Shown: in pieces, positions 14,900-58,923 of the stretch
How positions within the stretch are numbered: position 1 is the stretch's first letter
Layout of the letters: the number at the start of each line of letters is the position of its first letter
Source of the DNA: Paramoeba atlantica
Taxonomy: Eukaryota; Protista; Discosea
Reading direction: 5' to 3'
Assembly (NCBI GenBank): GCA_977017575.1
Contig: CDRNVI010000063.1
Span: 124,001-188,000, forward strand
DNA length: 64,000 bases
Notes under the pieces: model-generated
Seen by the model: the letters and a program-made list of their open reading frames with translations, nothing else
Told to the model about the DNA's origin: nothing
Database searches by the model: none
Position numbers and translations under genes: made by a program

Positions 14900-15788
14900 A
14901 TTTCTTTTTTAGCCTCTTCGTTAAACGCGGTGGTTGTTTTCAACTTAGAAGTCACTCATGCTGCGCGCTTCGCGTTGAAAACTACCGCCGCGTTTAACGA
15001 AGAGCCTAAAAAAGAAAATTTAGCCTGAAAAACGGAAAGATTATAGCCAAAAATAGCCGAATTTCGGGTAAAAATGGGGTGATTTTCGCGTATTTTTGCT
15101 CTCAGAGCACTAAATCCGACATTTGCGCGTGGGAAATCACTCGTAGGCATGAATGAAAGCCTACCGAATGTAAAAGGTAGAGAATGCGACTCCAACCATA
15201 CCATTCTTTCGACACAAAAATGCCCCTTTAGGTCCGAAAAATACTTTTTCACCTTTTTTAGTCAAAAATGGGTCATTTTGAGGGGCGCACCACGGTTTGA
15301 AGAAGGGATACCTTGCGAAAGCAACTGCGGAGAAAGCTAGTGTAGGTCCCAAACTATCAAAATACAATAGGGGAAACGATTTTGGAAAAATATTTTTTTT
15401 GTCATTTTTTTCGCCAAGTTGAAATTTTTTTCAAAAAATTTTTTCCGAAAAAATCCGAACTTGGCGGACCCGTCCTGCGGATACGCGGGGGGGTCACCCC
15501 CGGGTAGGGGTGTGGAAAATGCGCGCCAAGACCCCGGCTACCCTTTCTGCGTTTTTTTTTCGAAAACTAATTTTTTCGAAAAAATTTGCTCGACCATGAA
15601 CCCCCCTGGACCCCCCCCATGGACCCCCCACTTTTTTCAATTTTTTTTTTCAGTTTTGGTCCACCGGAGCCCCCTTTTATATTTTTTTCTTCTATTATAT
15701 TACTGTGTTCCTCTTTATATTTTCACTGTTTTTGTTCACTTTTTTTCAATAATCGAGGGTAGAGCGGTAGTTTTACAACCACCGCAAT
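14900..15788 (+). repeat. Family R interspersed repeat, copy 1 (long hairpin at one end)
   Basis: Near-identical inverted copy at 20265-21196. 44-bp stem at 14901-14944/14974-15017. Confidence 0.9.
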
Positions 15789-16513
15789 CCATCTTAAGTA
15801 GAATAATAGAAAAAATTCTTTGGTTTAGAATAAAATTAAGAAATAGCGTTCGATTAATTTCTGATTAATAAAAATTAATGATCCCGCATAAACTAAATTT
15901 TTATAACTCGAAATCCATTTATATAAATTAATGAGAGAGGGAGTATTATAGTAGCTGTCTACTTGAGAACTCTTTCTCGAGTACAGAAACGAACTCTTCT
16001 CGAGTACAGCCGAAGCCAAACCCTCCAGGCAAAAAGGACCGAAACGAGCTCATCTATTGGCCGCAAAATATATAAAAAAAGTTACAAGGTTACAACAAGG
16101 GGGTGACGTATTCAATTGAAATGATTTTCCTCCCCGATTCCATATTCTGATACCTTATGACCCATGGACTCAACGGGACATTAGTACAAGCTTGAAGCGC
16201 GGTACTGTGTAAAATGGGAGCCGCTGTGTTAAGTTTCCATCTTCTGCAAGAAAGAGTTGCTCTATCAACAGAGTTCCCCTATCAACAGAGTTCCTCGGAG
16301 CATTGCACCACCGATCATAAATAATAATAATTCTCTGCACCCTTGTTGATGCTGAGAGATTTAAATGGGTACACAAGACGGTGGACAAGGTACTTTATAG
16401 TTTATATCTGAATACCGTAAGACGGATGGGGTACGTCATTAAGTCTTAATGAACATCTTAAGATGATGTCGCCGTGACTTTTGTGCTCATGACTCCAAAA
16501 TCATTTTTGAAAC

Positions 16514-16626
16514 TCTTTTAGTCGCTTCGGTAAACGAGGTGGTTGTTTTCAACTTCGAAGGCACCAAATCTGCGCGCTTCGCGTTGAAAACTACCTCCGC
16601 GTTTAACGAAGTGACTAAAAAAGAAA
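16514..16626 (+). repeat. Family R hairpin, diverged copy
   Basis: Same arms and 29-nt loop as 14901-15017. Confidence 0.85.
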
Positions 16627-17069
16627 TAATTGCCAGGAAAAAGGAAGAAACCAGAGAGAATACAAACGAAAATGACCGACTTTTGGGTAAAAATATTAGT
16701 AATATTTTTTAAAAAGTCTTTTTCAGTGGAGGAAAGTTACTTTAAAGTACTTTTTTTTACTATAAAACTTTCAATTTTTTTTTCCGTTTATCCAAAAATT
16801 CGGTAGAGTAGAACTGCCATGACCTTTTCTTCGCATTCGAACTTCAGGTTACCTGTTATCTTGGAAATTGAAAGGGGTGAAAGGAATTGAAAGGGGTGAA
16901 GAGGGTGAAAGGGAGTGAAGGGTCTCGCATTACGCGAATAGGTACTTTTCCATTGAGTGAGTTGAGAGAGAAAAAAATGTGCGTAAAGAAAGATAGTAAA
17001 AATGCTGCTAAAGTGCAACTGATTCGCAAAATGCAGTAAAAAGCAAAAAAAGTACTTTATCAGCCCAAA

Positions 17070-18074: not shown

Positions 18075-18115
18075 AAACATTGATTATCAAGATACAGTTT
18101 CTGTACCTTGTTGGT
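18075..18115 (+). ncRNA. Spliced-leader exon-like 39-mer followed by GT
   Basis: AAACATTGATTATCAAGATACAGTTTCTGTACCTTGTTG|GT contains the conserved euglenozoan SL core CAGTTTCTGTAC and the TTG|GT junction. No convincing SL intron follows. Confidence 0.5.
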
Positions 18116-20087: not shown

Positions 20088-20264
20088 TACTGTGACCCTC
20101 CCCTTTAATATGCACCCCCTTCCCCCCCCCTAAATATGCACAAATTCGATGTTGAATTTTCGGAGCGTTTTTTTGAGAACAGATGTTTTGCCTATTTTTA
20201 CCCAATTTCTTCAAAAGGCTTTGTGCTTTTAAGCCTCTGATGTGCATCTATGTATGTGGAGATA

Positions 20265-21196
20265 ATTGCGGTGGTTGTAAAACTACCGCTCTACACTCGA
20301 TTATTGAAAAAAAAGTGAACAAAAACAGTGAAAATATAAAGGGGAACACAGTAATATAATAGAAGAAAAAATATAAAAGGGGGCTCCGGTGGACCAAAAC
20401 TGAAAAAAAAATTTGAAAAAAATGGGGGGTCCATGGGGGGGGGTCCATGGGGGAGGTCCAGGGGGGGGGTCCAGGGGGGGGGGGTCCAGGGGGGTTCATG
20501 GTCGAGCAAATTTTTTTCGAAAAAATTAGTTTTCGAAAAAAAACCGCAGAAAGGGTAGCCGGGGTCTTGGCGCGCATTTTCCACACCCCTACCCGGGGGT
20601 GACCCCCCCGCGTATCCGCAGGACGGGTCCGCCTAGTTCGGATTTTTTCGGAAAAAAAAATTTGAAAAAAATTTCAACTTGGCGAAAAAAATCGCAAAAA
20701 AAATATTTTTCCAAAATCGTTTCCCCAATTGTAGTTTGATAGTTTGGGACCTACACTAGCTTTCTCCGCAGTTGCTTTCGCAAGGTATCCCTTCTTCAAA
20801 CCGTGGTGCGCCCCTCAAAATGACCCATTTTTGACTAAAAAAGGTGAAAAAGTATTTTTCGGGCCTAAAGGGGCATTTTTGTGTCGAAAGAATGGTATGG
20901 TTGGAGTCGCATTCTCTACCCAATACGTTCGGTAGGCTTCCACTGATGCCTGCGAGTGATTTCCCACGCGCAAATGTCGGATTTAGTGCTCTGAGAGCAA
21001 AAATACGCGAAAATCACCCCATTTTTACCCGAAATTCGGCTATTTTTGGCTATAATCTTTCCGTTTTTCAGGCTAAATTTTCTTTTTTAGGCTCTTCGTT
21101 AAACGCGGCGGTAGTTTTCAACGCGAAGCGCGCAGCATGAGTGACTTCTAAGTTGAAAACAACCACCGCGTTTAACGAAGAGGCTAAAAAAGAAAT
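20265..21196 (-). repeat. Family R copy 2, inserted in the pogo 5' region
   Basis: Reverse complement of 14900-15788. Hairpin at 21079-21195. Confidence 0.9.
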
Positions 21197-21202
21197 ATAT
21201 AT

Positions 21203-23431
21203 TTGTATACTTGTTCCTCTCTTTCTCCCGTACTTTTCACCCTTATGTCAGATACTGACGGAGTTCCGACCACAGTTCACTCTGTGCGTGGACCTCTGAC
21301 CACTTGGCTTCGGAAGCTCCCTCCACAACCGCAAGTAGCGGAGCGCACACCCCTTATTATTAACAACACCCCGACGGTAACAGTTCAGGAAAAACGGCAG
21401 CGTACTGAACTTACTATATTCGAGAAACGAGAAATTTGTAGATCTCAAAGTTCTGTAGAGCAAACCGAACAAAAATATGGTATATCACGGAGAGCGGTTT
21501 ATGAAATTCGTAAAACGGGGATTGACCACTACCAAAAGTTAATTAACCGCAACATGGGAAACCAACACCGGAACCGGGGATTCAATGAAAGAGGGGGGGA
21601 TTATAGTAATGCGAATGCCGAAGTCTATGATAAGGCTGAGGCAATGCTGTCTGTTCATCGTGCTTGTGAGCAGGCCTCCGCATTGTGGTGCTCACTGACC
21701 AAGTCGATGGTGATCGACTTGATCCGACAGAAAACGAGATTAACTTCTATAACTGCTTTAGAAGACACTTATCAGCGTTTCAAAAAGCACTATGGATGGG
21801 TGTGGCGGAGATGGGGTCGAACGCAGTGCCTGGCGCCCAGTGACGTAGAATTTCGAATCTCTCAGTGGGCAGAGAAATTTTATACTCAAAACACTGTGCG
21901 TAAGTATCGCTTCGCTTTCTTCGGTGACGAAACTGCGATGTTTGTCAATGGAGAAGTTCAAGGATACACTCATGCTCCGATTCGTTGCCCACAGCCAAAA
22001 GTCGTGGATACCAATCTGAAAGAAACAGTTACAGCTTTTCTTGCAGGTGTGTATGATTTTGCTTTGGATAAGGTATTTCCACTTTACCCAACGGTGATCT
22101 TTGAGCACAATGCAAAGAATCGAGAAAGCTCTACCATTTACACTGAAATGACACGTCTAGCTTATTCTCTGAGCGGGATTTACATCGATGTAAGTCGTTC
22201 TGGGTGGGTTACTGACCATGTCTATGAGCGAATGTTAAAGAAATATTTACCCTATACTCTTGACAACCCCTCGACGGTTATTATCACGGACGATTATACC
22301 GCTCATAGAACGAATAATGTACCAACGAATTGTGATCCACAGACGATACCCGGAGGGTGTACGAAAGCCATACAATTCCATGATCGCGTTTTTAATCGCT
22401 TATTCAAGCGTCAATACAATGAGCTTCTTAGCGCGTGGCGACTTCGAAATAGCGCCCAGAAGGTTACTCGTGCGCTTGTTTTGCAATGGATTAAGGATGC
22501 ACATGCACATGTATGGGCAAAAAACCAGAGCACTTTATTAAAAGTAGCACAAACTTACATTTTGCGACCTGCGACTGAGTACCCTTGGATTGAGTCAAGC
22601 GTTACAGTTGGCTCAAAAGCTACTCTTGGAATATGTCCTGAACATGCCGTCTCATCCTCCTCAATTTCAAAAGGAGAAAAACCCACACAAGAATCCATTG
22701 TGGTAGAAGATAGTGCGGGCAACACGTCCCACTATGACAAAGAGTGGAAACGATTCCGCGGTCGAAAGCGATTTCTTACCACGCATGCTGTTGATACATT
22801 ATGCGAAAATGTATTGCAGGCATACCGTCTAGCCCCTTCCGCAGACAAAAGAATAGTTTTTTTGAACACAGGAAAGACTCGATTACTTTTAGGTTTTCAG
22901 CGCAAAATGTTCAGTCAAATTTTCCCCGACTCACGAATTATTGCGGTGCTCTTCTTTAACAACCATTTTTTTTTCGTGGAACTCCGAAAGCATCTGTTGA
23001 CAATATTTGATAGTTACGAGGATTATTCTCCGATTGCTCGTCAAAATTTTCTTCAGTGCTTTCTAAAATTATTCTGTCCTCTTCTTGGTCACTCAATAGA
23101 GGATGTTCGTCTTCGACATGCTTCAGTCATGCAGCAGGAGCCTACGCTAAATGAATGTGGAATACATGTAGTGAACAATTTATGTTCATTCCTGTTCTAT
23201 CCTGCCACATTCAGTAGAGTGAATAATGTTTTGACCCGAAAGAATCTTTCTAAGTCATGGTGGCCGTGCGGACCAGGAATTCTATCACTTCCTGAAAAAC
23301 AAAGTGCTGACGAAGAAACCGTCGGAGCGCTCCGTGACTCAGATTCCGATTGTGAGTATACAACCAATTTGATAAAAGATGTGCAGCTTGAAGATGCGAC
23401 CGCGGATGGATGGGAGCTGTCCGAAAATTAA
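21203..23431 (+). CDS. Pogo-like DD30D transposase fused to a C-terminal Ulp1/C48-type peptidase (likely start 21245)
   Basis: HTH (LTIFEKREIC..KYGISRRAVYEIRK), FFGDET, ITDDYTAH and IQFHD. C-terminal NNHF, IFDS and QQ..NECGIHV. Confidence 0.85.
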   Translation: MYTCSSLSPVLFTLMSDTDGVPTTVHSVRGPLTTWLRKLPPQPQVAERTPLIINNTPTVTVQEKRQRTELTIFEKREICRSQSSVEQTEQKYGISRRAVYEIRKTGIDHYQKLINRNMGNQHRNRGFNERGGDYSNANAEVYDKAEAMLSVHRACEQASALWCSLTKSMVIDLIRQKTRLTSITALEDTYQRFKKHYGWVWRRWGRTQCLAPSDVEFRISQWAEKFYTQNTVRKYRFAFFGDETAMFVNGEVQGYTHAPIRCPQPKVVDTNLKETVTAFLAGVYDFALDKVFPLYPTVIFEHNAKNRESSTIYTEMTRLAYSLSGIYIDVSRSGWVTDHVYERMLKKYLPYTLDNPSTVIITDDYTAHRTNNVPTNCDPQTIPGGCTKAIQFHDRVFNRLFKRQYNELLSAWRLRNSAQKVTRALVLQWIKDAHAHVWAKNQSTLLKVAQTYILRPATEYPWIESSVTVGSKATLGICPEHAVSSSSISKGEKPTQESIVVEDSAGNTSHYDKEWKRFRGRKRFLTTHAVDTLCENVLQAYRLAPSADKRIVFLNTGKTRLLLGFQRKMFSQIFPDSRIIAVLFFNNHFFFVELRKHLLTIFDSYEDYSPIARQNFLQCFLKLFCPLLGHSIEDVRLRHASVMQQEPTLNECGIHVVNNLCSFLFYPATFSRVNNVLTRKNLSKSWWPCGPGILSLPEKQSADEETVGALRDSDSDCEYTTNLIKDVQLEDATADGWELSEN

Positions 23432-23971
23432 TGACGGAGATACAAATTCCTATCCAAAATAAGTTTATGTGCGCGCTATTATACTCAAATTTTACACAGA
23501 TATTTTTTGTGGGGGTTTTCCATGTTTTGTTCGACGCTTCTACACTTTTTCCCCGCACTAGCTTCTTGTTGCATTAGTACGCACCCTCTTCTTCGTGTTT
23601 CACCATACACGACATTTACTTCATGTATTAATAATAAGAGCTACAACAATTAAACTTACAAATAATATTTTTTATTAAATATTTTAATATTTAATACATA
23701 CAGAACGTGTATGTACACGTTCTTCACATTTTCCATGCTGGCACACACGAACAGTCCCCCCGCCCCGGCCATCATCTCTGCTGAAAAGTACCATACGCTG
23801 TGCGACGTAAGATCAAAACACGCACAGGAGAGAAAGGCGCCGCGAAGCGGCGCAATTCTTTTTTCTTGGGGGGGGGGCGGCGGGTTCTCCCCTCTCTTAC
23901 CCCCCCCCCCCCCGCCCTTGAATATGCAGAAACCCCAAAAACGTGTGCATATTAAAGGGGGGGTCACAGTA

Positions 23972-30570: not shown

Positions 30571-32295
30571 TCAATAGTACCATGCGATTTGAGTCCGTTG
30601 AAGTCCTAAAACAATTTCATCGGGAAGTAATTTTTCATTCACATGTCCATGAAGGTGTGGATTGTCGTCTAGATTTAATGTACACAAATATTTGGGCAGT
30701 GCAGTCAGCTGTACACTCCCTTCAAAGGAATTGTTATTCAACATAAGAGCACTCAACTGGGGGCTTAACTTTGTTAGATCAGGTGTCCCAGTAAAGTTAT
30801 TGTGACCGAGATTGAGAACTGTGATACCGTAGGGCAGATCTTGTAAATCTATCGGACCTGAAAAGTTATTGTGCTCGACATTGAAATGAGTTATCGAATC
30901 AGAAAGAGTATTGAGGTCAAGAGTACCATGCAGTTGATTATGAGCCATTCGGAATGTATGCAGTGAGTGCGGGATTGACCCTAATTCCAGCAAGCCCGAG
31001 AAAGCGTTTTCACTGAGGTCAATCACTTTCAAGGATTCTGGAACACTACTCATATCCAGATTTCCAGATAGTTTGTTGTTATTCAAGTAGAGAGCCGATA
31101 AAGTACATGGTAAAGTAGAAAACTCGATATTTTTGATATCGTTATAGGAAAGATCTACAGTTCTCAGATCCTGTGGTAGGTCTTGTAGATCTAGTATTTC
31201 GACGAAAGCGTTTCTGCTGAGATCAAGCTTCGTAATATCGGGTGGCAACTGACCTAAACTAAGACTTCCAGTAAATGAATTGTTGTGTGCTTCGAATTCA
31301 AGTAGACCCTCAGGAAGCGTGCTAAGATTAAGTTTTCCGTGAAATCTGTTGCTCGATAATTTCAATTCTGTCAATGACGCGGGTAACTTATCAAGAAAGA
31401 GTCTTCCAGATAAGGAATTGTGCTCCACTTTGAGTGCAGTTAAATGGTTCGGTAACATGCTGAGATCCAGCTCCCCAGAAAGATTGTTGTATGATGTGTT
31501 AAAATGATCCAATCCTTCTGGGAGCATACTTAAGTCCAAAGTATTTTCGAAAAGATTGGTGGTTAGCGTCAAGTCCTGCAGGGCAGTAGGAAGATGCCCA
31601 AGACTTAGGGAACCCGTCAGAAGGTTCATGCCGAGATCTAAGCTCATTAAGGATGTGGGTAACTCACGAAGATTAATTGCTCCTTCAAATCTATTGTTAT
31701 ATGCAGCAAAGCATTCAAGGCTCAGGGGTAAATCGTTCATTTGAATTTCCCCACTAAACAAGTTTAATTCCAGCTTCAGCACCTTTAGCATCGAAGGCAA
31801 ACGAGTGAAATCTATTCCGCCTTCAAATTGGTTATTGGAGAAATCTATAAAAGTTAAATTCTGCGGTAAAACACTTAGATCCGGCCTGCCGGAAAACCCG
31901 TTGCCTTCCACGGAGAGCACTGTCACACTTCTAGGAACGTATTCCAAGTGCAATTCACCCGTCATTCCTATGATAGAGCTCTCCGAGTCCCACTCAATGC
32001 GCTCTACTTCGCCGTTCGTGTTGCAATGTATGCCTTCCCACTCACAGGCAGGTGTTGCTACTTTCCAGGAGGAGTGCTGATTGATTGTTTCCGATATGAG
32101 TCTTTCTAGTTCGTATTCTTGTGGTAAAAGAGCGCCTCGAATCTTTCCGGTGCGAGAATAAATTCTTTGCTTGTTAAGCATTTCTTTACTCGAAGTGCTT
32201 TGGTGTGTCTTTCGACGCTTTGTAGGAGGCTGTTGATCGTCACAGACGCAAATTGAAATTGCCATTCTGAACATAGAAATTAATAAATGATGCAC
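30571..32295 (-). CDS. Long leucine-rich repeat protein (likely start 32274 or 32265)
   Basis: PTKRRK, RTGKIRGALLPQEYEL, TPACEWEGIHC cap and many LP..L..L.L..N.F.G repeats. Confidence 0.9.
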   Translation of the reverse strand: MHHLLISMFRMAISICVCDDQQPPTKRRKTHQSTSSKEMLNKQRIYSRTGKIRGALLPQEYELERLISETINQHSSWKVATPACEWEGIHCNTNGEVERIEWDSESSIIGMTGELHLEYVPRSVTVLSVEGNGFSGRPDLSVLPQNLTFIDFSNNQFEGGIDFTRLPSMLKVLKLELNLFSGEIQMNDLPLSLECFAAYNNRFEGAINLRELPTSLMSLDLGMNLLTGSLSLGHLPTALQDLTLTTNLFENTLDLSMLPEGLDHFNTSYNNLSGELDLSMLPNHLTALKVEHNSLSGRLFLDKLPASLTELKLSSNRFHGKLNLSTLPEGLLEFEAHNNSFTGSLSLGQLPPDITKLDLSRNAFVEILDLQDLPQDLRTVDLSYNDIKNIEFSTLPCTLSALYLNNNKLSGNLDMSSVPESLKVIDLSENAFSGLLELGSIPHSLHTFRMAHNQLHGTLDLNTLSDSITHFNVEHNNFSGPIDLQDLPYGITVLNLGHNNFTGTPDLTKLSPQLSALMLNNNSFEGSVQLTALPKYLCTLNLDDNPHLHGHVNEKLLPDEIVLGLQRTQIAWYY

Positions 32296-32789: not shown

Positions 32790-33397
32790 GTCGTCGTAGG
32801 TCCAAACATTAAAAAACAAAATTGAAAAAAATGGGGGGTCCAGGGGGCGCATATGCTCTTTAAAAAATTTATGGTTCGAAATCCAGCGAAGAGAAGTGTT
32901 AGTACGCAGCGGCGATAATTCCCCCCCCCCCCCCACCCCCACTTGGGGGTGACCCCCCCTGGTACGCGCAGGAGGGCCTCGGCAAGTTCGAAATTCCAAA
33001 AGAAATCCAAAAGAAAAGTAAAAATATTATTTTTCCAAAATCGACTCCTAAAACATACAGGGGTGCGAATCTAAAGGTGGGGGGGTCTAAAATTCGTAAA
33101 AGTTGTCCAATTTTGGAAAATAATAAGAGTTTGGGCTACCATTCTACGACGGTTTTTTCGTCAGGTGCGCCTCCTACCCCTACTGGTAAGGCATCAAAGG
33201 CAGCCCAAATTTGGGTCAAAATTTCGTTTTTTTGGCCCAAAAATCGGGCATTTCACCCAAATTGTACAAAAAATTGTATTATTCGTGATCTTTTTGTCAA
33301 TTTTTCTTTTTTAGTCGCTTCATTAAACGCGGAGGTAGTTTTCAACTCGAAGCCCGCAGCATGAGTGACTTCTACGTTGAAAACAACCACCGCGTTT
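32790..33397 (-). repeat. Diverged family R relative ending in the hairpin (33303-33397)
   Basis: Shares the GGGGGTGACCCCCC block, GCAAGTTCG and the hairpin arms and loop. Confidence 0.65.
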
Positions 33398-45729: not shown

Positions 45730-46769
45730 GGAGAGAGAAAAAAGAAAAAAAAACACCCCAGTGCTCTTTTCAAGACAGAAAAGTGATGGTTCTTGCGATA
45801 GCTTTTGTACATGTACAAAATGTACATACAGAAAGGGAGGGAATTCGTAAGGGTTCACGTAACGTATACAGAAAGGGAGGGAATTCGTAAGGATTCAGCT
45901 ACTAGTCGTGCTTGTAGAATGTTTATTTTCATAGACAGGCAGAATGCCTGGAGTCCAACGGACCGAAACTATTAATCATCATTTAGAGTAGTTCGTGATA
46001 AGAAAAAGTCCCCCCTTTTTTCTAAGAAAAAACTTACAAAAAAAGTGTGTAAGTGGCTAACTTAGAGGAATGAAACTTAAAAAAACGTCACCTGGACGAA
46101 CCGAAGCGAACCGAGGCGAACCGACCCAATCCCATTGAAACCAATGACGATTTCTACTTGGCGTTTTTTTCAAAGCTAGCTGCAAACTTTCCATGTTCAA
46201 AAAAATGTGCACTTCTATATGATTTTCTTGTATACTCCCACATTACACGCTGCAGTCCTAGAGGCACAGTTCCGGCACTGTGAAGTGAAGTCTTTACTGG
46301 AGGACGGAGAAAACCTCTAGTATCATGGAAATTTTCCTTGCAGTATGGAGGTGCCTGTGATGGTACGGACGCATGTAAGTGTTTGTAAATTTCTTGTTGA
46401 CTTATTTCTCCTTTCCTTCTTTACTCCCCCCCCCCCCCCATGGCAGAACTCCCCAAGGGTCTATTGTTCTGTGCGTACTGTGGCTCGAAGTTCGAACCAC
46501 CCTCCCCTCCCACCGGCTGTGCCCGACGTGTGCACACACAACCGGCCAGGCGTACCGACCCATCTGGGACGCACCCTCATCTCTTGGGCCAGCCCACGGC
46601 GGACGCAAGCAGAACACCTCCTCGCGTGAGTCCTCCCGTTCCCTCTCCCGCGATAGCAGGCCGTGCCTCTTTTGCACGCAGCCGTTCTCCCCTGGACATC
46701 ATTTCCACCGTTTCTGTCCCGTGTGCGCGGAATTGAGGGCCCAGCGCCAGAGCTCGGCCCCCCACCCAT

Positions 46770-47668: not shown

Positions 47669-48778
47669 CTACGATAAGATGCATTTTTCTTTTCCAAGCT
47701 GAAGCGGCCCAGGTCGTTGAGGATTACCTGTAAACTGTGTACCAGTTGGAATTGCGGATTTATCAATAGGGCCCGTAAACTCGTTATTTTGTATTTCAAG
47801 AATTTTAAGCTCGGGCGGCAAATTTTGGATGAACAGGCGACCAAAAAATTGGTTGTCATTAAGTTGAAGAGTGTGAAGCATCTTCGGGAGGTGTGATAAC
47901 TCGAGTGTTCCACTTAGTCTGTTATGCGCCAGAGAAACTGAAACAGAAAAGGGAGGAAGCATGCTCAGATAGATCCCTCCAACCAACTCATTATTGGAAA
48001 GGTGAAGCTCAGTGAGCACCGGTGGTAAATACGACAGGCAGATTTCGCCGTGAAGCCTGTTATACATAACGTCTAGTGACTTCAACCGAGAAGGGAGCTC
48101 GGTGAGGTCTAGAGACCCAATCAGTCGATTGTGATCGAGCCCCAGAATTTCTAAAGCCGGCGGAAGGCCCACCAATGATATCTCCCCTGTGAGGTGATTC
48201 GACCCCAGAAACAGCACGTGCAGCCCTGCGGGAAGTGCGCTCAGCTCGAGGCTTCCCCCCAAAGCATTGTGGTGCAATGAAAGACCACGGAGAGAGGGGG
48301 CCAGTTCCTCCAGCCGCAGCTGACCGCTGAGAAGGTTCTCACTCAGAAACAACCTCCGTAGTACACGGAGCCCCAGAGTGGGATATAATCGTCCGGAAAA
48401 TGTGTTCCTCGAGAGCCGCACAATCTCAAGCGAGGTGCAATGTTCGGGAAGTACGACGGAGCCACCGAGAGCATTCTGGCGCAAGCTGATCTCACGCAGA
48501 CTCCGTGGCAGAGCGGCCCAGTTGATGCCGCCCTCCAGACCCATCTCGCCCCAAGAAATGCGCTGGATTTGACCGTCGGGGTTACATGTGACCCCTTCCC
48601 ATTGGTGAGCGGGGAAGGGGAGATCACACCCGGACGAAGTAGGGCGCAACCACGAGTCGTGAGGATTGTAAATGTATTGAACCAAATTCTGTAGCTGCAG
48701 CTCCGGGGAGAGGTCGGCGTTTAGCGGGGGAAGGGCTTGCGAAGAGGACTCCGAGAGGTGATGGGAAGAGGTATCCAT
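47669..48778 (-). CDS. LRR protein with C-terminal CaaX (CILS), paralogue of 44545
   Basis: LQNLVQYIYNP..HQWEGVTC, collinear with ORF 44545. Confidence 0.88.
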   Translation of the reverse strand: MDTSSHHLSESSSQALPPLNADLSPELQLQNLVQYIYNPHDSWLRPTSSGCDLPFPAHQWEGVTCNPDGQIQRISWGEMGLEGGINWAALPRSLREISLRQNALGGSVVLPEHCTSLEIVRLSRNTFSGRLYPTLGLRVLRRLFLSENLLSGQLRLEELAPSLRGLSLHHNALGGSLELSALPAGLHVLFLGSNHLTGEISLVGLPPALEILGLDHNRLIGSLDLTELPSRLKSLDVMYNRLHGEICLSYLPPVLTELHLSNNELVGGIYLSMLPPFSVSVSLAHNRLSGTLELSHLPKMLHTLQLNDNQFFGRLFIQNLPPELKILEIQNNEFTGPIDKSAIPTGTQFTGNPQRPGPLQLGKEKCILS

Positions 48779-48969
48779 GAACAGAAAGGAATCCGCGAAG
48801 GATTTACAGAATCTTAGGGTTTTAAAAAACTCTTTTAGATTTTATGATTCTTGTATGAACAATTCAGTTCGAAAAGAAAAGTACTGTATCCTCCTGGTTA
48901 CCTGTCACTACTTTTCGGGAAAAGGTGAAATATACGAAAACAAGAAAAGGTGAGATATACAACTGTATA

Positions 48970-51900
48970 CTGTGACCCCCCCTTTAATATGCACCCCCTT
49001 CTTACCCCCCTTTAATATGCACAAAATGGAGGCTGAAGAAAATATGTGTAGTGGGACCCCCCCTTTAATATGCAGAAAATTGAAGTTGAAGAAAGTTCGT
49101 GTGGTGGGACCGATTTGATTTTTTCTTTTTTTATTCTGTTTGGAAAGTCACTTAGGCTACCAACTTCCAACAATAAACTTCCAACTTCCAACAATAAGTT
49201 ACTCAATACTGTAGACTTTTTAGCTTTCTCTATCTGCTCTATCTGTTTCTCTTCGTCAACACATGCCGCACACGGACGGTGTACCGACAACCGTGTATAT
49301 GATAAAAGGTCCGCTGTCGAGTTGGGCTCGGTCAGCGCCACCCTCCCCCCAGGTAGGGGAACGGGCACCTGTTCTACAAACGAAAGCACCTCCAACGGTA
49401 AACGAAAAAAAGAGGCAGCGAGTTGAACTCACAATTTACGACAAACGCGAGATTTGTCGATCCCAGGATTCGGTGAAGGCTATTCGAGAAAAGTACGGGA
49501 TATCTCGAAGAACAGTGTACGACATCCGTGCGACTGGAATATTGAATTATCAAAAGTTAATAAATCGAGATATGGGGAACCAGCATCGTAACAGAGGGTT
49601 TAACACCAAAGGAGGTGATTACAACGACCCGGAGTCTGTCACGTACAATAAGGCAGAGGCAATGTATGAAATTCATCGTGCTTGTGAAAAGGCATCTTCC
49701 TTGTGGTGTCCCTTGACCAAATCCATTGTAATCGATCTAATACGCCAAAACACGAAGTTGACTTCGGTTTCAGCATTGGAAGACACATATGCACGCTTCC
49801 GGAAGCATTATGGGTGGGTTTGGAGAAGGTGGGGAAGGATACAGTGCCTGGCTCCGGCAGACGTGGAACATAGGATATCACAGTGGGCGCAAAACTTTTA
49901 CTTTCAGAATGCTGTTCGGAAATATTTTTTCCGAATATTTTTTTCGGGGACGAAACGGCGATGTTCGTAAACGGTGAGGTACAAGGATATACGCTAGCGC
50001 AGATCGGATGCCCGCAACCGAAGGTGTTCGACACAAATCCCAAGGAAACTGTTACCGTCTTCCTGGCTGGAATATATGACTTTGCTCTAGATAAGGTTTA
50101 CCCTCTTTACCCAACTGTTATATTCAACCACAGCGCCAAGAATCGTGAAAGTTCTGGCATTTATGCTGAAATGACGCGCCAGGCTTCCGCTCTTACTGGA
50201 ATATACGCGGATGTTAGTCAATCTGGTTGGGTAAAGGGAGTTATTTATCCGCGAATGCTTCATAAGTATCTCCCCTATACGCTCGAAAACCCATCTACCG
50301 TCATTATTACGGATGATTATAGCGGGCACCGAACAGATAATATTCCTCCAAATTGCGATCCACATACGATACCAGGAGGTTGCACAAAGGCGATACAAGT
50401 GCATGACCGAGTTTTTAACCGATTATTCAAGCGTGAATACAATGAGATTCTGACTGGCGACTCGACAACACTTCTCAGAAAGTATCTCGCGCTCTGGTAC
50501 TACAGTGGATAAAAGATGCGCACTCACGCGTGTGGTTGAAAAATAAGAATTCCATATTATCTGTCGTCCGTATATATATCCAGCGACCTGCAACGGAGTA
50601 CCCTTGGGTAGAAAAAGCCAAACCTGGGTCCAAAACATCTGACACGGAAACCAAAAACCAAGACGAAAACTGTTTGACCACGAGCGAAACCTCACAGATC
50701 GATGCTCCTCCCATAATTGGTGTAGATAGTTTACTGAGCACTGGGAGTCATGATAATGAATGGAAGCGCTTTCGCGGTCCTAAGCGCTTCCTTACAACTC
50801 ACGCTGTTGACACGCTGTGTCAAAACGTAATAAGGGCTTATCGGCTGTTATCCCGTGCAGAGAACGAAATAGTTTTTTTGAATACTGGAAAGACAAGATT
50901 GATGTGAGGATTCAATCGCCCACCTTCTGATCTAATCACCACAGATTCACGCATTGTTGCCGTTCTCTTCTTTAACAATCACCTTATTTTGGTAGAACTC
51001 CGAAGGTCCCTGCTCACAGTGTATGACAGCTATGAGGCGTATTCTCCATTCGCCCGAAGCGACTTTTTAAAATTATTCTTGGAACGGGCAACTCCTCTTC
51101 TTGGGCAAGAAAGTGGGAACAATCGTGTTAAATATGAAAAGGTCTTGCAGCAGGAGCCTATGCTAAATGAATGCGGATTGCATGTTGTTAACAACTTATG
51201 CTCTTTGTTATTCTACCCTGCAACTTTTTCTAGGGTTGACAATGTGCTTGTCAGAAAAAATCTTTCCAGGTCCTGGTGGCCTCGTGGTCCAGGAATTCCT
51301 CTACCCCCTGAACGAACAACAAATTCCGAAGAAACCCTTGGAGAAGTGTCCGTGGAGAACGTGTGAAGATGATTCTGATTCTGATTGTTCTATAATTGTG
51401 AATTTAGTGAATGATTTGAACTTTGAAGATGAGTCCGTTAACAGTTGAAAACTTTATGGGGTCAAGGACATTGTCAAGAAAATGTTGGGGCTTAGCGAAC
51501 CTCACCTCCCGAGCTTTATTTCCGTCCACAGCAACGGTTCATATTGTAATATTATTTTTTACCACGGAACTGGGCTTTTCTGTGGTTTTTACTCGGTGTC
51601 GTGTAAGTCCTCGTAGTGATTCTCCAGGCATATTCTACTATGGGCGTTCAACAAACTCGAAATAATATTATAGTATCCTATGAATCAGTTACATTAGTAA
51701 CTAGTATTTAGGTATACACATTTTTTTATATTTTTTACTTTAAGCACTTTCTTGTTTATTAGTGTTACACAAGCTTCATGAAAAATATCTTTGCTCGAGA
51801 ACAGTTCCTTCACTCTCTTCCCCTCCGTCATCGACCCTTGCTTCGCCACCGATGTCATTGGTACCATGTACGCACTTTCCACCATCCCCCTTGTTTCACC

Positions 51901-52061
51901 CTTTTCTTCCCCCCTTTATTATGTACCCCCCCTTATTATGCCCCCCCCCCCCCCTTTATTATGCACCCCCCTTTATTATGCACCCCCCCTTTATTATGCA
52001 CCCCCCCCTTTATTATGCACAAACTCCAAAAACGTGTGCATATTAAAGGGGGGGGTCACAG
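48970..52061 (+). mobile_element. Pogo-like DNA transposon, copy 2, TA TSD
   Basis: TIR CTGTGACCCCCCCTTTAATATGCAC at both ends. CCCCCTTTATTATGCA minisatellite at about 51910-52020. Confidence 0.92.
49263..51448 (+). pseudogene. Pogo DD30D-Ulp1 fusion gene, disrupted
   Basis: Collinear with 21245-23431. Frameshifts near 49930, 50460 and 51360, and a TGA at 50905. Confidence 0.85.
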
Positions 52062-52979
52062 TAAGTTAACGGGGGGGTACGGTGTGACAGATAACTAGGG
52101 GGTTCAATGTGTGACAGATAACTAGGGGAGGGGGGGGCGGTCACCAAAAAAATAGAAAGAGGAAGTTAGTGACAAAAAAGACGCCTTTAACCCCTATAAG
52201 ATTTTTGTCCACCCGGGATTTCTTTCTTTTCTTCCTATGCACGATCACTCACTTTCAAACTGATAAGAAAGGAAATAAAAGTTTTGTTTTTTTGAAAAAG
52301 ACGAAAAACGTGACAGTTAACTAGTGGGGGGATCACGTGTGACCGATAACTAGGGGGTACAGTAAAATAAGCTTGCGTAGAGTAAAATAAAAGTACTGTC
52401 CCCTCTATTTACTATTTAGTACCTTGCCCCCTCTATTTAGAGGGTTGAAACCTACGAAAGGCAAAACCTGGCAAAACCCGCATATTCCTCATTGGAGAGT
52501 ATGCAGTAGGTCTGTGTAAGTTCGTGTTGGTCCGTGACGAGCTGTGTAGGTACGTGTAGGTTCGTGGTAATCCGTGTAGATTCGTGTAGGTTCGTGTAAG
52601 TTTTTTTTTGACATTTTTTGAGAAGGTTCATTGGCTCGGCCGCTAGGATGATTGCATGTAACTAAAGTAGACCGAATTAAACCACTGTCCGGGTTAATAT
52701 TCCCGGTAGGAATAATAAGAGGGTATAGGAATACAACGAGGTATAGGATTATTAGAAAATTAGCAGAAAAGGACCAAAACATTTTTCCCGCCGCTTCGCG
52801 GCACGATCTTTGATCTTGTCCTCGTTTGGGTCTTGTGTGTGCTTGAAGCTCGCTATTTTGATGAAAGAAACATACAAAAAAGGGATTTTCGAGGGGTGAG
52901 TTGTGTGGATCTCAAGCAAAGACAGGGTAGGTGTCGGGGAGAGGGGGGTAGGAATATTAAGCACCGTTGGGACGACTTA

Positions 52980-53541: not shown

Positions 53542-54515
53542 CTGTATAGGGTCGATCATGCGTTTTTGGAACGGTTCTGCAGTCTGCTATGAGATAGATT
53601 TTTGGAAAATAACGGCGAATTCGTGAAGATCTGTGGGAGAGCTCAACCGAAAAAATACTTCCGACCTGAGGAGAACATAAATTGTAAGTTAAATATTAGT
53701 GACAAAACACGTTTTTTCGGATTTTTCAGAAGAAAAATTTCAATAATTCACCGATTTTTATAATTTTTTCCCAACTTTCACCACGCCCACCTAGGACCCA
53801 GGGGGGGTGATAGGCAAAGCAAGGATGGGAAATGCACTAGTTTTCGAGATCTGTTGAATGTCGAAGGAATTAGGTCAAAAGCTCGCACGGTGCGCTCTGG
53901 AGCCCGGGGGGAAACCAATAACTGGACTGTATAGCAACCAATGCGCTGTTCACAAATAGCTCATGTACGAAATAAATGAATAAGAAATCAGTGCGAGTAA
54001 ACGCAGATGAAGATAACTCGCTTGAGGAAAACGAATCTCTTTCATGCACAACTGCGTCACTTGACTCTTCGTCATACAATTCCAGGAAGTTCGCCATATT
54101 TGGAAATTTCGAGGAAAAGTAAAATAAAGGTTAGAGAAAAGCAAAGTAAAATCTCTCGAAAAAAATAGCTCTCCTGATATGCTATTAATAGAGGGAACGT
54201 GAATATCTCAAATTTTTGAACGTTAAAGTGATGCTGTAGCCCCCTAGGCTCCTTCTGATGAAAAAGAAAAGGTTCGCTTATTCATTGTGGGGTATTATTT
54301 CAGACGGTTATATGCAAAAATAGGGGGCTAGACCGTGAATTTTAGGCTGAAAAGATCACATTTCTCCTCCAAGTAATTTTTTTTGCAAAAGTGAAGTTTG
54401 AGAGTATTTTTACGTCGAGTCATTGTCATAAGAAGTACACTGCGGATTTTATTCTTATTATAGCAGCCATGGTACCCCCTGGAGAACCGTTCCATTTTTC
54501 ACGATCGACCTATAA
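53542..54515. mobile_element. Family S-related element with imperfect TIRs
   Basis: TA-CTGTATAGGGTCGATC..GGAACGGTTCT versus AGAACCGTTCC..GATCGACCTATA. Confidence 0.5.
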
Positions 54516-55100
54516 GTTGAAAACAACCACCGCGCTTAACGAAGAGCCTAAAAAAGAAAAATATTAAAAATGAACTAAAGTAAAACTACTAGAAATCGGA
54601 AAAAAAGTGGGTCTGTGTAAATCTGTGTGAATTCGTGTAGATCCGTGTAAGTTCGTGTAGGTTTTTTTTGAACCCCAACCTAGTCCATCTGCAGACTCTC
54701 CATTGACGTGGCGAAGGAAACTACTCTGTCAAAAATAGTGAAGAACATACTTGATCTCCATCGTGCGCTGCAAAACATTTTCGCGCCACAAAAAATTAAA
54801 ATTTTGAAAAAAATATTTTTCGAAATACACCCCCAGAAAGGGTAGCCGAGGCCACCCCCGTACTCGGGCACGACTCCCCCTGGTATCAACAGGACGGGTC
54901 CGCCAAGTTCGTTTTTTTCTGAAAATAAAGTTGAGAGAAAGTCAACTTGGCGAAAAACATGGCTTAAAAAACAGCTTTTCAAAAAAGTTTCACCTAAAGT
55001 AGTTTGAGAGTTTGGGACCTATACTAGCTTTCTACGACGTTGTTTTCACAAGATACCCCTTCTTGAAGACGTAACGCGTCTCCCAAAATGACGCCCACAA
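54516..55100 (-). repeat. Diverged family R body starting with one hairpin arm
   Basis: GTTGAAAACAACCACCGCGCTTAACGAAGAGCCTAAAAAAGAAA, then blocks matching 20520-20830. Confidence 0.65.
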
Positions 55101-55440
55101 AAATAGTTCCTGGCAAAACCAGGCAAAACTTAACAGGTTTCAACCCTCTTAGTGTTTAATTTCAAAGGTTCGTAGAAATTGGCGCCGCGAAGCGGCGCCG
55201 TTTTCTTTTCCCCTGTAATATTCGATTTCGTCTAATTTAATCTACTCATTCGAAATAGAAGTGGAAAAAGTTTCTTTTTCTTGATACATTCCTCTTCTTT
55301 GTATGTCGATTGGACCTCTTTCTGGCTGGTGCAGATCAAGACAACCGCTTCCTCGGGTTGGTTCATTGACTAACCAGATTGCCTCAAATGTTGATGTGAC
55401 GTCCGTCCTCGAGGAAGCATTGCCACACACAAAAGCCAGT

Positions 55441-55620
55441 CTTTCAATGTAAGACAAGCTGACGATTAGCAGATCGAGCGAGAGTGCAAAGTCGCTATCA
55501 AAGAAGTATAAAGTGACAGAGCAGTGTATTTATCAGATCAAGCGAATCGGTTCTTAGTTTATCAAGAACGAGTAAACCGTGGTGGGAGTTCTATAAAAAA
55601 AGAAAGGAACGCTAATCCGT
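55441..55620 (+). pseudogene. Pogo-like HTH remnant
   Basis: KLTISRSSESAKSLSKKYKVTEQCIYQIKRIG resembles the N-terminal HTH of ORF 21203. Contains stops. Confidence 0.35.
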
Positions 55621-58752: not shown

Positions 58753-58923
58753 GACCCCATGAACCCCCTTTTTTTTCAATTTTTCAGTTTTGGACCACCG
58801 GAGCCCCCTTTTATAGTTTTTTCTTCTATTATATTACTGTGTTCCTCTTTGTATTTTGACTGTTTTTGTTCACTTTTTTTTCAATAATCGAGGGTAGAGC
58901 GGTAGTTTTACAACCACCGCAAT
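58753..58923 (+). repeat. Family R terminal fragment
   Basis: Ends in the same GCGGTAGTTTTACAACCACCGCAAT as 15788. Confidence 0.85.

Follow-up and report, generated by a model that had tools for sequence, protein, structure and literature searches.

A pogo-type DNA transposon encoding a transposase with a C-terminal Ulp1/SENP-like protease domain

The DNA analysed here is a stretch of 64,000 nucleotides (the window) from a kinetoplastid-type host genome. It contains a structurally complete cut-and-paste DNA transposon of the pogo superfamily (DDE_1), referred to below as copy 1. The element is flanked by a TA target-site duplication, which could be read directly on the left (20088-20089) as well as on the right side (23970-23971), and it is bounded by terminal inverted repeats (TIRs) of 26 nt. 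The 5' TIR (20090-20115, forward strand) begins with CTGTGACCC, extends through to TTTAATATGCAC and contains the 17-mer CCCCCTTTAWTATGCAC once; this 17-mer is repeated in direct orientation at 20125-20141. The 3' TIR (23944-23969, reverse strand) is the mirror of the 5' TIR. These are exactly the ends given in a first-pass annotation of this DNA, which had described a TIR/TA-bounded element at 20090-23969. In the window, 13 occurrences of the 17-mer were counted, exclusively at element ends, compared to an expectation of 0.03. TA on both sides together with 26-nt TIRs was detected not only for copy 1, but also for a second element of the window (copy 2) and for the copy L002. An empty site matching the TA duplication was not found, the flanks being unique in the window and in the loci. 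When the flanks of copy 1 are joined they form no continuous ORF, indicating no visible split of a gene by the element. Rfam gave no match in the 64,000-nt window.

Copy 1 is interrupted at approximately 20265-21196, past the 5' TIR and before the start codon, by a nested insertion of some 930 bp. This insertion is an unrelated, very high-copy repeat and foreign to the pogo element proper. It is 93% identical to positions 15788-14900 of the window, the depth over it is 100- to 1000-fold higher, and contigs from other runs connect 20247 to 21194, skipping it. The insertion is also absent from the copy L001, which is 98.5% identical to copy 1. The existence of this nearly identical copy and of internally deleted derivatives of the copy 1 subfamily in other runs indicates recent activity of the subfamily. 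Because of its position just 5' of the start codon, the nested insertion may have an effect on expression of copy 1. No element sequence was detected in RNA, as far as the one run guessed to be RNA is concerned, and L003, whose ends show neither a spliced leader nor poly(A), is therefore not callable as a transcript.

Copy 1 contains a single, intron-less ORF on the forward strand. In the ORF listing it starts with a TTG and covers 21203-23431 (742 aa), and the residue numbers used throughout follow this listing (TTG 21203). The conserved ATG at 21245 is the likely start, since the homologous methionine starts the ORF of copy 2. The intact transposase-protease ORF (21245-23431, TAA stop) would then encode 728 aa, so that the single 742-aa ORF noted at first pass is present, though probably somewhat shorter.

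The N-terminal DNA-binding region (aa 60-230, 21380-21892, forward strand as for all regions of the ORF) was tentatively assigned to the helix-turn-helix type on account of weak matches in copy 2, one piece of which gave sub-threshold Pfam matches to CENP-B_N (E 0.002), HTH_28 (E 0.0014) and HTH_23 (E about 0.002). With copy 1, Pfam returned no N-terminal HTH match, not even a sub-threshold one. The following catalytic core (aa 231-455, 21893-22567) was matched by Pfam PF03184 (DDE_1) at aa 294-437 with an E-value of 2.2e-7 (31 bits, cut-off 22), and P0007 and the L004/L005 copies likewise gave DDE_1 matches. Assigned by motif and not by structure, the acidic triad comprises D242 (GDET, 21926-21928), D363/D364 (TDDYTAH, D363 at 22289-22291) and D394 (HDRV, 22382-22384). 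Provided that D363 is the catalytic residue, 30 residues separate the second and the third Asp, which together with the Pfam match agrees with the DD30D core proposed at first pass. D394 (column D380 of A3) is invariant in all six aligned sequences, and the other two motifs correspond to the A3 majority consensus. There was no rve/integrase match on the transposase in Pfam. A word-index search of 5.8 billion proteins with the whole ORF yielded only two relatives, both from the same assembly, indicating that the transposase is very diverged. The matches of the transposase part to 'Pizza' designer-repeat entries of the PDB obtained with phmmer were spurious and contained no passing stretch.

A poorly conserved linker (aa 456-509, 22568-22729; amino acid identity of 0.38 between copies 1 and 2) connects the core to a C-terminal domain (aa 510-700, 22730-23302). 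By profile, model, Foldseek and VIA, this domain resembles the Ulp1/SENP-like cysteine proteases of family C48 (clan CE). Its motifs NNH588F, FD603S, Q644-Q645 and NEC652G contain a complete His-Asp-Cys triad, namely His588 (22964-22966), Asp603 (23009-23011) and Cys652 (23156-23158), as well as the oxyanion residue Gln645 (23135-23137). The first-pass annotation had already recognized His, Asp, Gln-Gln and Cys in C48 order; all of them are present and in register with Ulp1 in the profile alignment. Compared with the PDB, the family profile matched only Ulp1, SENP1, Ulp2 and SENP5 (E 1e-5 to 1e-3; Ulp1 1euv, E 1.2e-5). The match to Ulp1 and a fold match with a Z-score of 15 place the C-terminal motifs far beyond chance.

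An AlphaFold2 model of the domain based on a 15-sequence alignment reached a pLDDT of 80, with more than 90 in the core; single-sequence AlphaFold gave an unusable model (pLDDT 43). With the former, all of the top 50 Foldseek matches were clan-CE proteases of the Ulp1/SENP type (Ulp1, E 1.2e-6). In VIA, the comparison with SENP2 gave a Z-score of 15.4 (rmsd 2.9 Å over 166 residues). The values for SENP2, SENP5, SENP1, Den1 and Ulp1 ranged from 14.3 to 15.4, and those for bacterial CE effectors (about 10) and for adenain and poxvirus I7L (about 8.7) were all clearly below the scores of these eukaryotic enzymes. Of the 30 Atlas feature matches of the domain 28 were C48, as were all Atlas structure matches. 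According to the model, the C-terminal domain thus has the Ulp1/SENP-type C48 fold suspected at first pass, and we regard this fold and the anatomy of the element as nearly certain.

Pfam detected no C48 match on the whole ORF. For the isolated domain PF02902 was the only family match, but remained below threshold (E 0.055, 13.7 bits, cut-off 20.7), so that of the two Pfam families expected from the first-pass annotation DDE_1 was recovered and Peptidase_C48 was not. We treat this score as a limit of sensitivity, and passing the threshold not as a trait that defines the family. The relatives P0016 and P0017, found by phmmer, pass the Pfam C48 threshold unaided (29.3 and 31.6 bits), and C48 is a Pfam match in 6 of 15 family members. 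A phmmer search of the PDB with the C-terminal domain returned nothing above noise (EpiD and other entries with E above 0.08). Word-index searches of proteins gave no match for the C-terminal part of the ORF, and for the protease region of P0007 only this protein itself.

The cellular proteases Ulp1, SENP and Den1 (1EUV, 1TH0, 2G4D, 1XT9) share with the domain the predicted fold (Z 14-15, rmsd about 3 Å over about 165 residues) as well as His, Asp, Gln and Cys in the same order and with the same spacing. For Ulp1, we take the catalytic residues to be H514, D531, Q574 and C580. Asp and Cys lie 49 residues apart here and, by these residue numbers, also in Ulp1. In contrast, His and Asp are 15 instead of 17 residues apart, Gln and Cys are separated by one residue more, and the identity amounts to only 9-16%. 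Unlike its cellular counterparts, the domain is fused to a transposase and has His and Phe at the probable clamp positions: the two Trp residues that form a clamping tunnel over the Gly-Gly of SUMO in Ulp1 (W448 and W515) correspond to His528 and Phe589 in an extended HMM alignment, in which identity is low there and equivalence uncertain. This apparent replacement suggests that substrate specificity may differ from that of canonical SUMO proteases. Since the NEDD8 protease Den1 scores as high as the SENPs, the fold does not identify the modifier that is cut.

The ORF ends with an acidic tail (aa 701-742, 23303-23428) that is predicted to be disordered (pLDDT below 50). It consists of a run of Asp and Ser residues, followed by a short hydrophobic one and by a Gly-Trp motif, which reads DGWE in copy 1 and EGW in 3 of 7 aligned family tails. 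The acidic stretch with its hydrophobic run is possibly a SUMO-interaction motif, a candidate that we mention as a lead only.

Copy 2 (48968-52063, forward strand) is a dead member of a diverged subfamily with 67% nucleotide identity to copy 1. It has the same TIRs, which together with the TA dinucleotides occupy 48968-48995 and 52036-52063, and six tandem 17-mers at 51910-52020. Its ORF is broken into pieces on the forward strand (49263-49970, 49883-50512, 50530-50907 and 50989-51366) by two frameshifts, one close to aa 240 and the other close to aa 411, and by an in-frame stop at 50905-50907. The first-pass annotation had described it (48970-52061) as a diverged copy keeping His, Asp, Gln-Gln and Cys; the residues are indeed retained, but the copy is a pseudogene. 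A second intact fusion ORF, P0007 (784 aa), originates from a different run with a different GC content and aligns to the copy 1 protein over aa 60-686 (E 6e-113). We rejected a programmed frameshift or a two-ORF design, as the ORFs of copy 1 and P0007 are each single and intact, and copy 2, L002, L004 and L005 are broken at differing sites. Two further C48 domains, L007 and L008, lie on pieces too short to show a fusion to a transposase. Scans of JGI metagenomes with full-length and protease alignments detected no relatives.

The same domain order is found in at least six diverged lineages, one of them from another sequencing run. Between these lineages the proteins differ by 24-60% in the DDE and by 34-72% in the C48 domain. 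The two domains diverge in step (Mantel r 0.91, a value reached in 3 of 720 permutations), and their trees show the same major splits. Collinearity in six lineages and this co-divergence point to a single, old fusion under selection, as judged from sequence comparison. Values of pN/pS were 0.17 in the DDE core, 0.22-0.30 in the DNA-binding region (0.22 for copies 1 versus 2), 0.30-0.41 in the C48 domain, 0.59-0.79 in the linker (0.63 for copies 1 versus 2) and 0.57 in the acidic tail; they are rough, as synonymous sites are saturated and some pseudogenes were compared, which mixes selected and neutral phases. Between copies 1 and 2, pN and pS in the C48 domain were 0.22 and 0.73, and pN was 0.44 in the linker and 0.34 in the tail. 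Neutral evolution of the protease domain, named at first pass as a finding that would refute the interpretation given there, is therefore not what was observed, its pN/pS being similar to that of the DNA-binding region and well below that of the linker.

These results bear on the question whether the domain might be a passenger, i.e. a captured host SENP fragment that is useless to the element and evolves neutrally. Host gene fragments are often captured by transposons, and plant Mutator elements spread Ulp-like genes (PMC2836005; PMC12903978). Here, such a capture is hardly credible: transposase and protease domain share one reading frame in two intact ORFs of different organisms, pN lies well below pS unlike in the linker, C48 and DDE core co-diverge over six lineages and most members retain the catalytic residues. 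Host-gene capture without function was rejected on the basis of the selection and co-divergence results. We also consider it quite improbable that C48 cuts the fusion in cis or in trans to release free transposase and free protease, like the viral polyprotein proteases of the clan. The clan CE processing proteases adenain, poxvirus I7L and ASFV pS273R do match the model (Z 8.5-9), and the long, poorly conserved interdomain linker could house a cleavage site. However, the model is far closer to SENP/Ulp/Den1 (Z 14-15), and the linker (aa 456-509) lacks Gly-Gly; all Gly-Gly motifs of the ORF fall within the DNA-binding region or the DDE region, and P0007 does not conserve the first of them.

Alternatively, the domain might be a non-catalytic reader, a SUMO- or Ubl-binding or protein-docking module that cleaves nothing and serves to anchor the transposase at modified chromatin or at repair foci. 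The apparent replacement of the Trp clamp by His528 and Phe589, the resemblance of the tail to a SUMO-interaction motif and the sub-threshold Pfam C48 score would be in accordance with this. We nevertheless regard it as unlikely, because retention of all four residues, His, Asp, Gln and Cys, is unexpected for a pure binding module. Both intact ORFs and most other lineages have them, and nearly all family members retain their catalytic residues, dead ones included; losses of His or Asp are confined to three fragmentary members (P0003, P0009 and P0006, the latter with an internal deletion). The findings as a whole are best explained, with a probability of roughly 0.6, by an old, selected pogo-C48 fusion with an active isopeptidase acting at the site of transposition.

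Comparable architectures are known from other transposons. Ginger1 transposases of Hydra and other animals carry a C-terminal Ulp1 or OTU protease domain, and Ulp1 is also present in Mutator elements, for which a role in SUMO/ubiquitin-linked steps of transposition has been proposed as for Ginger1 (PMC2836005). Like the element described here, Ginger1 is a TIR-bounded cut-and-paste transposon encoding a DDE-type transposase and a C-terminal Ulp1 domain (pfam02902-type) in a single polypeptide, and the proposed role is the same. But its transposase is Gypsy-integrase-like, with a YPYY motif, a zinc finger and a GPY/F motif, instead of pogo DDE_1, and it resides in animal hosts, often with introns, as opposed to an intron-less element with TA duplication and 26-nt TIRs in a kinetoplastid-type genome. 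To judge from the sequences, the likeness is analogous, not homologous. C48 was repeatedly recruited by Mutator-like (KI-MULE), CACTA/En-Spm, hAT and Crypton elements, too (PMC2836005; PMC3212892; PMC12903978), and a hAT+Ulp cluster was seen among our Atlas matches. These, however, belong to other superfamilies, in many of which the protease is not fused to the transposase as a conserved extension in the same frame, but is encoded by a gene of its own or derives from a host gene that was captured and amplified. DDE_1, an Asp as third catalytic residue, a D-to-D distance of about 30, TA and short TIRs are shared with pogo, Tigger, Fot1, Lemi and others of the pogo superfamily, whose N-terminal HTH has a putative counterpart here (PMC7386202).

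The pogo survey of Gao et al. 2020 lists CENP-B dimerisation, KRAB and zinc finger domains as extra domains of domesticated genes, and mentions no protease or peptidase domain (PMC7386202). Full-text literature searches gave no description of a pogo-Ulp1 fusion either. In feature space, on the other hand, the whole protein lies closest (score 0.91, with 193 of 256 features in common) to an Atlas cluster of 64 mostly basidiomycete members named 'Ubiquitin-like protease family profile domain-containing protein', in which PF03184 DDE_1 occurs in 69% and PF02902 Peptidase_C48 in 53% of the members. In contrast to our protein the cluster, known here by its automatic label only, is fungal and its representative is longer (1151 versus 728 aa). 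Hence, whether the fusion is already catalogued, a point raised at first pass, has a divided answer: no pogo paper describing it was found, but the DDE_1 and C48 pair is probably already present in public protein databases as fungal entries. None of the three findings named at first pass as refuting its interpretation was obtained, and that interpretation is supported.

Returning to the favoured reading of an old fusion with an active isopeptidase, the protease domain would be a putative isopeptidase for SUMO or another ubiquitin-like modifier. It could ride into the nucleus with the transposase and act in trans where transposition occurs. The target freed of its modifier there would be the transposase itself, a chromatin or silencing factor or a protein of double-strand-break repair. 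Such removal might promote excision and integration or help to repair the donor site, and the acidic tail with its short hydrophobic run may aid SUMO binding. The function proposed at first pass, deSUMOylation or self-processing, is likewise putative. That catalytic Ubl deconjugation benefits the element is, in our estimate, evenly balanced. A further and rather doubtful proposal is that the fusion represents a convergent, independent acquisition of a SUMO/Ubl isopeptidase by one more DNA-transposon superfamily after Ginger1, Mutator, CACTA, hAT and Crypton, with the protease as a true transposition or anti-silencing factor; SUMO would then be stripped from host chromatin, repair proteins or transposase at the moment of cutting.

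In kinetoplastids, SUMO marks active chromatin. Ulp1-type domains were repeatedly acquired by unrelated DNA transposons and, to our knowledge, nobody has shown what the element gains from them. The advance made here is limited, since Ulp1 domains on transposases are an established pattern and fungal database entries probably already contain the same Pfam pair. The element adds the pogo/Tc1-mariner group to the superfamilies with an Ulp1-type accessory domain, and a young DNA transposon family to the kinetoplastids, from which no DNA transposon had been reported before 2021 (PMC8101967). As a small, intron-less single-ORF fusion with clear purifying selection and many diverged copies within one genome, it is a useful test case, in which wild type and Cys mutant are directly comparable with regard to transposition and deSUMOylation. 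If the protease were indeed a convergently acquired transposition or anti-silencing factor, the element would be the simplest system to study why transposons keep recruiting deSUMOylases.

The first-pass annotation had placed a pogo-like element (copy 1) at 20090-23969 and a diverged relative (copy 2) at 48970-52061. The limits of copy 1 were found exactly there: a TA at 20088-20089 directly precedes the 26-nt 5' terminal inverted repeat, the 3' repeat occupies 23944-23969 as its mirror image, and the right TA follows immediately (23970-23971). Copy 2 is bounded by these same terminal repeats and by TA flanks. It shares 67% DNA identity with copy 1 and keeps the catalytic residues, but it is a dead copy: its reading frame shifts near residue 240 and again near residue 411, and an in-frame stop interrupts it at 50905-50907. 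The 17-mer CCCCCTTTAWTATGCAC inside the terminal repeat occurs 13 times in the window, compared to 0.03 occurrences expected by chance. All 13 are located in the ends of the two copies and are probably transposase-binding sites. Just inside the 3' repeat of copy 2, six tandem copies of this core (51910-52020) lie in opposite orientation to the terminal copy, resulting in hairpin-capable palindromes, e.g. 52000-52021 with 52035-52056. The corresponding site of copy 1 contains one degenerate 17-mer only.

Copy 1 exceeds copy 2 in length by about 800 bp; the difference stems from a very high-copy repeat, unrelated to the element, inserted between the 5' repeat and the start codon of copy 1 (about 20265-21196). 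This insert is absent from L001, a copy that the same assembly contains on a different contig, and other sequencing runs yielded contigs joining position 20247 directly to 21194. The nested repeat ends in a hairpin with a perfect stem of 44 nt (21079-21122 / 21152-21195), recurs in the window at 14900-15788, 16513-16694, 33299-33397, 54507-54564 and 58755-58923, and reaches a depth in other runs 100- to 1000-fold above that of the pogo element. Judging from the 98.5% identity between copy 1 and L001, the copy 1 subfamily is young. Three other runs from one study contained contigs with the element and copies without the nested insert, together with internally deleted derivatives (joints 21188 to 23936 and 22051 to 23921). 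In the sole run guessed to be RNA, element sequence was absent.

The open reading frame of copy 1 (21203-23431, forward strand) comprises the 742 codons proposed, counted from a TTG. However, the protein most likely has 728 amino acids and starts at the first ATG (21245), since this codon aligns with the start methionine of copy 2. A Pfam search identified the transposase domain DDE_1 (PF03184, E 2.2e-7) with 31 bits against a gathering score of 22. Acidic residues are present in the usual pogo motifs, namely D242 (GDET), D363 (TDDYTAH) and D394 (HDRV). Taking D363 as the second catalytic residue, the distance to the third is 30 residues, in agreement with the proposed DD30D core. D394 is invariant over six diverged relatives, and GDET and TDDYTAH are present in the majority consensus of the alignment. 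The N-terminal helix-turn-helix gave sub-threshold Pfam matches, on a piece of copy 2 only. DDE_1, the acidic motifs and the TA duplication place copy 1 in the pogo superfamily.

The same Pfam search did not return a C48 match on the whole open reading frame, and with the isolated C-terminal domain (aa 510-700) Peptidase_C48 was the sole match at E 0.055. Comparison of this domain with the PDB by phmmer gave noise only. Searched exhaustively with phmmer, 1.84 billion representatives yielded 15 relatives. One of these, P0007, is a further full-length fusion, and two stand-alone ones, P0016 and P0017, reach the Pfam C48 threshold by themselves (E about 1e-7). A profile of 15 family sequences (alignment A1) had Ulp1 (1EUV, E 1.2e-5), SENP1, Ulp2 and SENP5 as its top matches in the PDB, and in the alignment with 1EUV His588, Asp603, Gln645 and Cys652 stand opposite the catalytic His, Asp, oxyanion Gln and Cys of Ulp1, in the C48 order noted before. 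The AlphaFold2 model based on A1 reached a pLDDT of 80 (above 90 through the core), and its best 50 Foldseek matches were all clan-CE proteases, with Ulp1 first (E 1.2e-6). In the VIA comparison, SENP2 scored highest (Z 15.4, 2.9 A, 166 residues); eukaryotic SENP, Ulp and Den1 proteins lay at Z 14-15.4, bacterial CE effectors at about 10 and adenain and poxvirus I7L at about 8.7. A protein-language-model search found C48 in 28 of 30 neighbours, and the Atlas shape search with this domain returned C48 clusters exclusively. Four lines of evidence agree that the C-terminal domain is Ulp1/SENP-like. In Ulp1 two Trp residues clamp the SUMO Gly-Gly. The extended 1EUV alignment places His528 and Phe589 at these positions, in a stretch of low identity. 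This suggests, as a lead, that the Trp clamp may have been lost in the copy 1 domain, in contrast to canonical SUMO proteases.

Both copy 1 and P0007 carry the fusion in frame. P0007 is a 784-aa open reading frame found in another public run; its contig has 54% GC (44% for the window), and the protein aligns to residues 60-686 of copy 1 (E 6e-113). In the assembly of the window (ERZ24900291) a protease-like domain was detected in four further lineages (L002, L004, L005 and L006); in the first three of these it follows directly downstream of the DDE_1 region, with breaks at differing places. In P0006 (317 aa), an internally deleted member from the same assembly, the N-terminal DNA-binding region runs straight into the distal half of the protease domain within one open reading frame; the DDE core and the His and Asp motifs are missing, and P0006 is probably a non-autonomous derivative.

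Selection was assessed by Nei-Gojobori counts for each domain, with pN/pS values that are rough because pS is saturated (0.73-0.92). Between copy 1 and copy 2, pN and pN/pS were 0.21 and 0.22 for the DNA-binding region, 0.15 and 0.17 for the DDE core and 0.22 and 0.30 for the protease domain, compared to 0.44 and 0.63 for the linker (aa 456-509) and 0.34 and 0.57 for the tail (aa 701-742). Other copy pairs gave the same order of domains. The protease domain has therefore experienced purifying selection of about the same strength as the DNA-binding region. Across six lineages, pairwise protein distances for the DDE part correlate closely with those for the C48 part (Mantel r 0.91; 3 of 720 permutations as high), and the two trees agree in their main groups: copy 1 with copy 2 and L002; L003 alone; L004 with L005. 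Since the distances correlate and the trees group alike, the data fit a single ancestral fusion followed by joint divergence rather than repeated capture. A neutral passenger is excluded by the domain-wise pN/pS values together with this co-divergence.

We think that the C48 domain is catalytically active, acting as an isopeptidase on SUMO or another ubiquitin-like modifier. Because Den1 reached Z 15.1 against the model, the fold cannot tell SUMO from NEDD8 specificity. The predicted enzyme would work in trans at the sites of transposase action, and its targets may be the transposase itself, chromatin or repair factors. The same role has been proposed for the Ulp1 and OTU domains of Ginger1 (PMC2836005). 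Self-processing, in which the domain would cleave the fusion protein and which the first-pass annotation had offered beside deSUMOylation, is less likely: the model resembles SENPs much more than the processing proteases of viruses, and Gly-Gly is absent from the linker. A non-catalytic reader module is possible, but would not readily explain why all four catalytic residues persist in the intact open reading frames and in most lineages. The tail (23303-23428) is predicted to be disordered and shows, across subfamilies (alignment A2), a stretch rich in Asp and Ser, followed by a short hydrophobic segment and a Gly-Trp motif; as a lead, this resembles a SUMO-interaction motif with casein-kinase-type sites.

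Between its transposons the window carries unremarkable host genes (CLP1, zinc-finger and leucine-rich-repeat proteins); three leucine-rich-repeat genes, all on the reverse strand, lie within 18 kb with transposons interspersed (30571-32295, 44545-45858 and 47669-48778). A weak match to the pogo DNA-binding region at 55288-55551 (29%, 89 aa, E 4e-7) may be the remnant of another, more distant pogo-like element. Contig L006 (2317-2478 and 4269-5381) carries a Tc1-type transposase gene (DDE_3, HTH_Tnp_Tc3_2) beside a pogo-Ulp1 remnant, indicating a genome with several cut-and-paste families. Two sequence features point to a kinetoplastid origin of this genome, namely the spliced-leader core CAGTTTCTGTAC with a GT donor at about 18085-18112 (region 18075-18115), outside any visible array, and a helicase with a REH2-type dsRNA-binding domain on a neighbouring contig. 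DNA transposons of kinetoplastids were first reported only in 2021 (Merlin elements, PMC8101967).

The first-pass annotation had not recognised the architecture as one described for pogo. Full-text searches of the literature gave no report of a pogo or Tc1-mariner transposase with a Ulp1 or C48 domain, and the main pogo survey (PMC7386202) nowhere mentions a protease or peptidase. However, in feature space the whole protein lies closest (score 0.91, 193 of 256 features shared) to a cluster of 64 proteins, mainly from Basidiomycota, with DDE_1 in 69% and Peptidase_C48 in 53% of its members according to the cluster annotation. As a lead, the pair is therefore likely to be already present in public databases. 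One study on cut-and-paste elements of fungi names 'C48 protease' as an accessory domain, with the superfamily not stated. Mutator, CACTA and Crypton elements carry Ulp1 as well (PMC2836005, PMC3212892, PMC12903978), and the Atlas contains a plant hAT-Ulp cluster. A C-terminal Ulp1 on a transposase is already established for Ginger1 (PMC2836005), whereas here the Ulp1-like domain resides on a pogo transposase. Overall, the first-pass observation is borne out and its interpretation receives support. The fusion of a transposase with Ulp1 is a known pattern, which this element shows with a pogo transposase and in a genome of kinetoplastid type.
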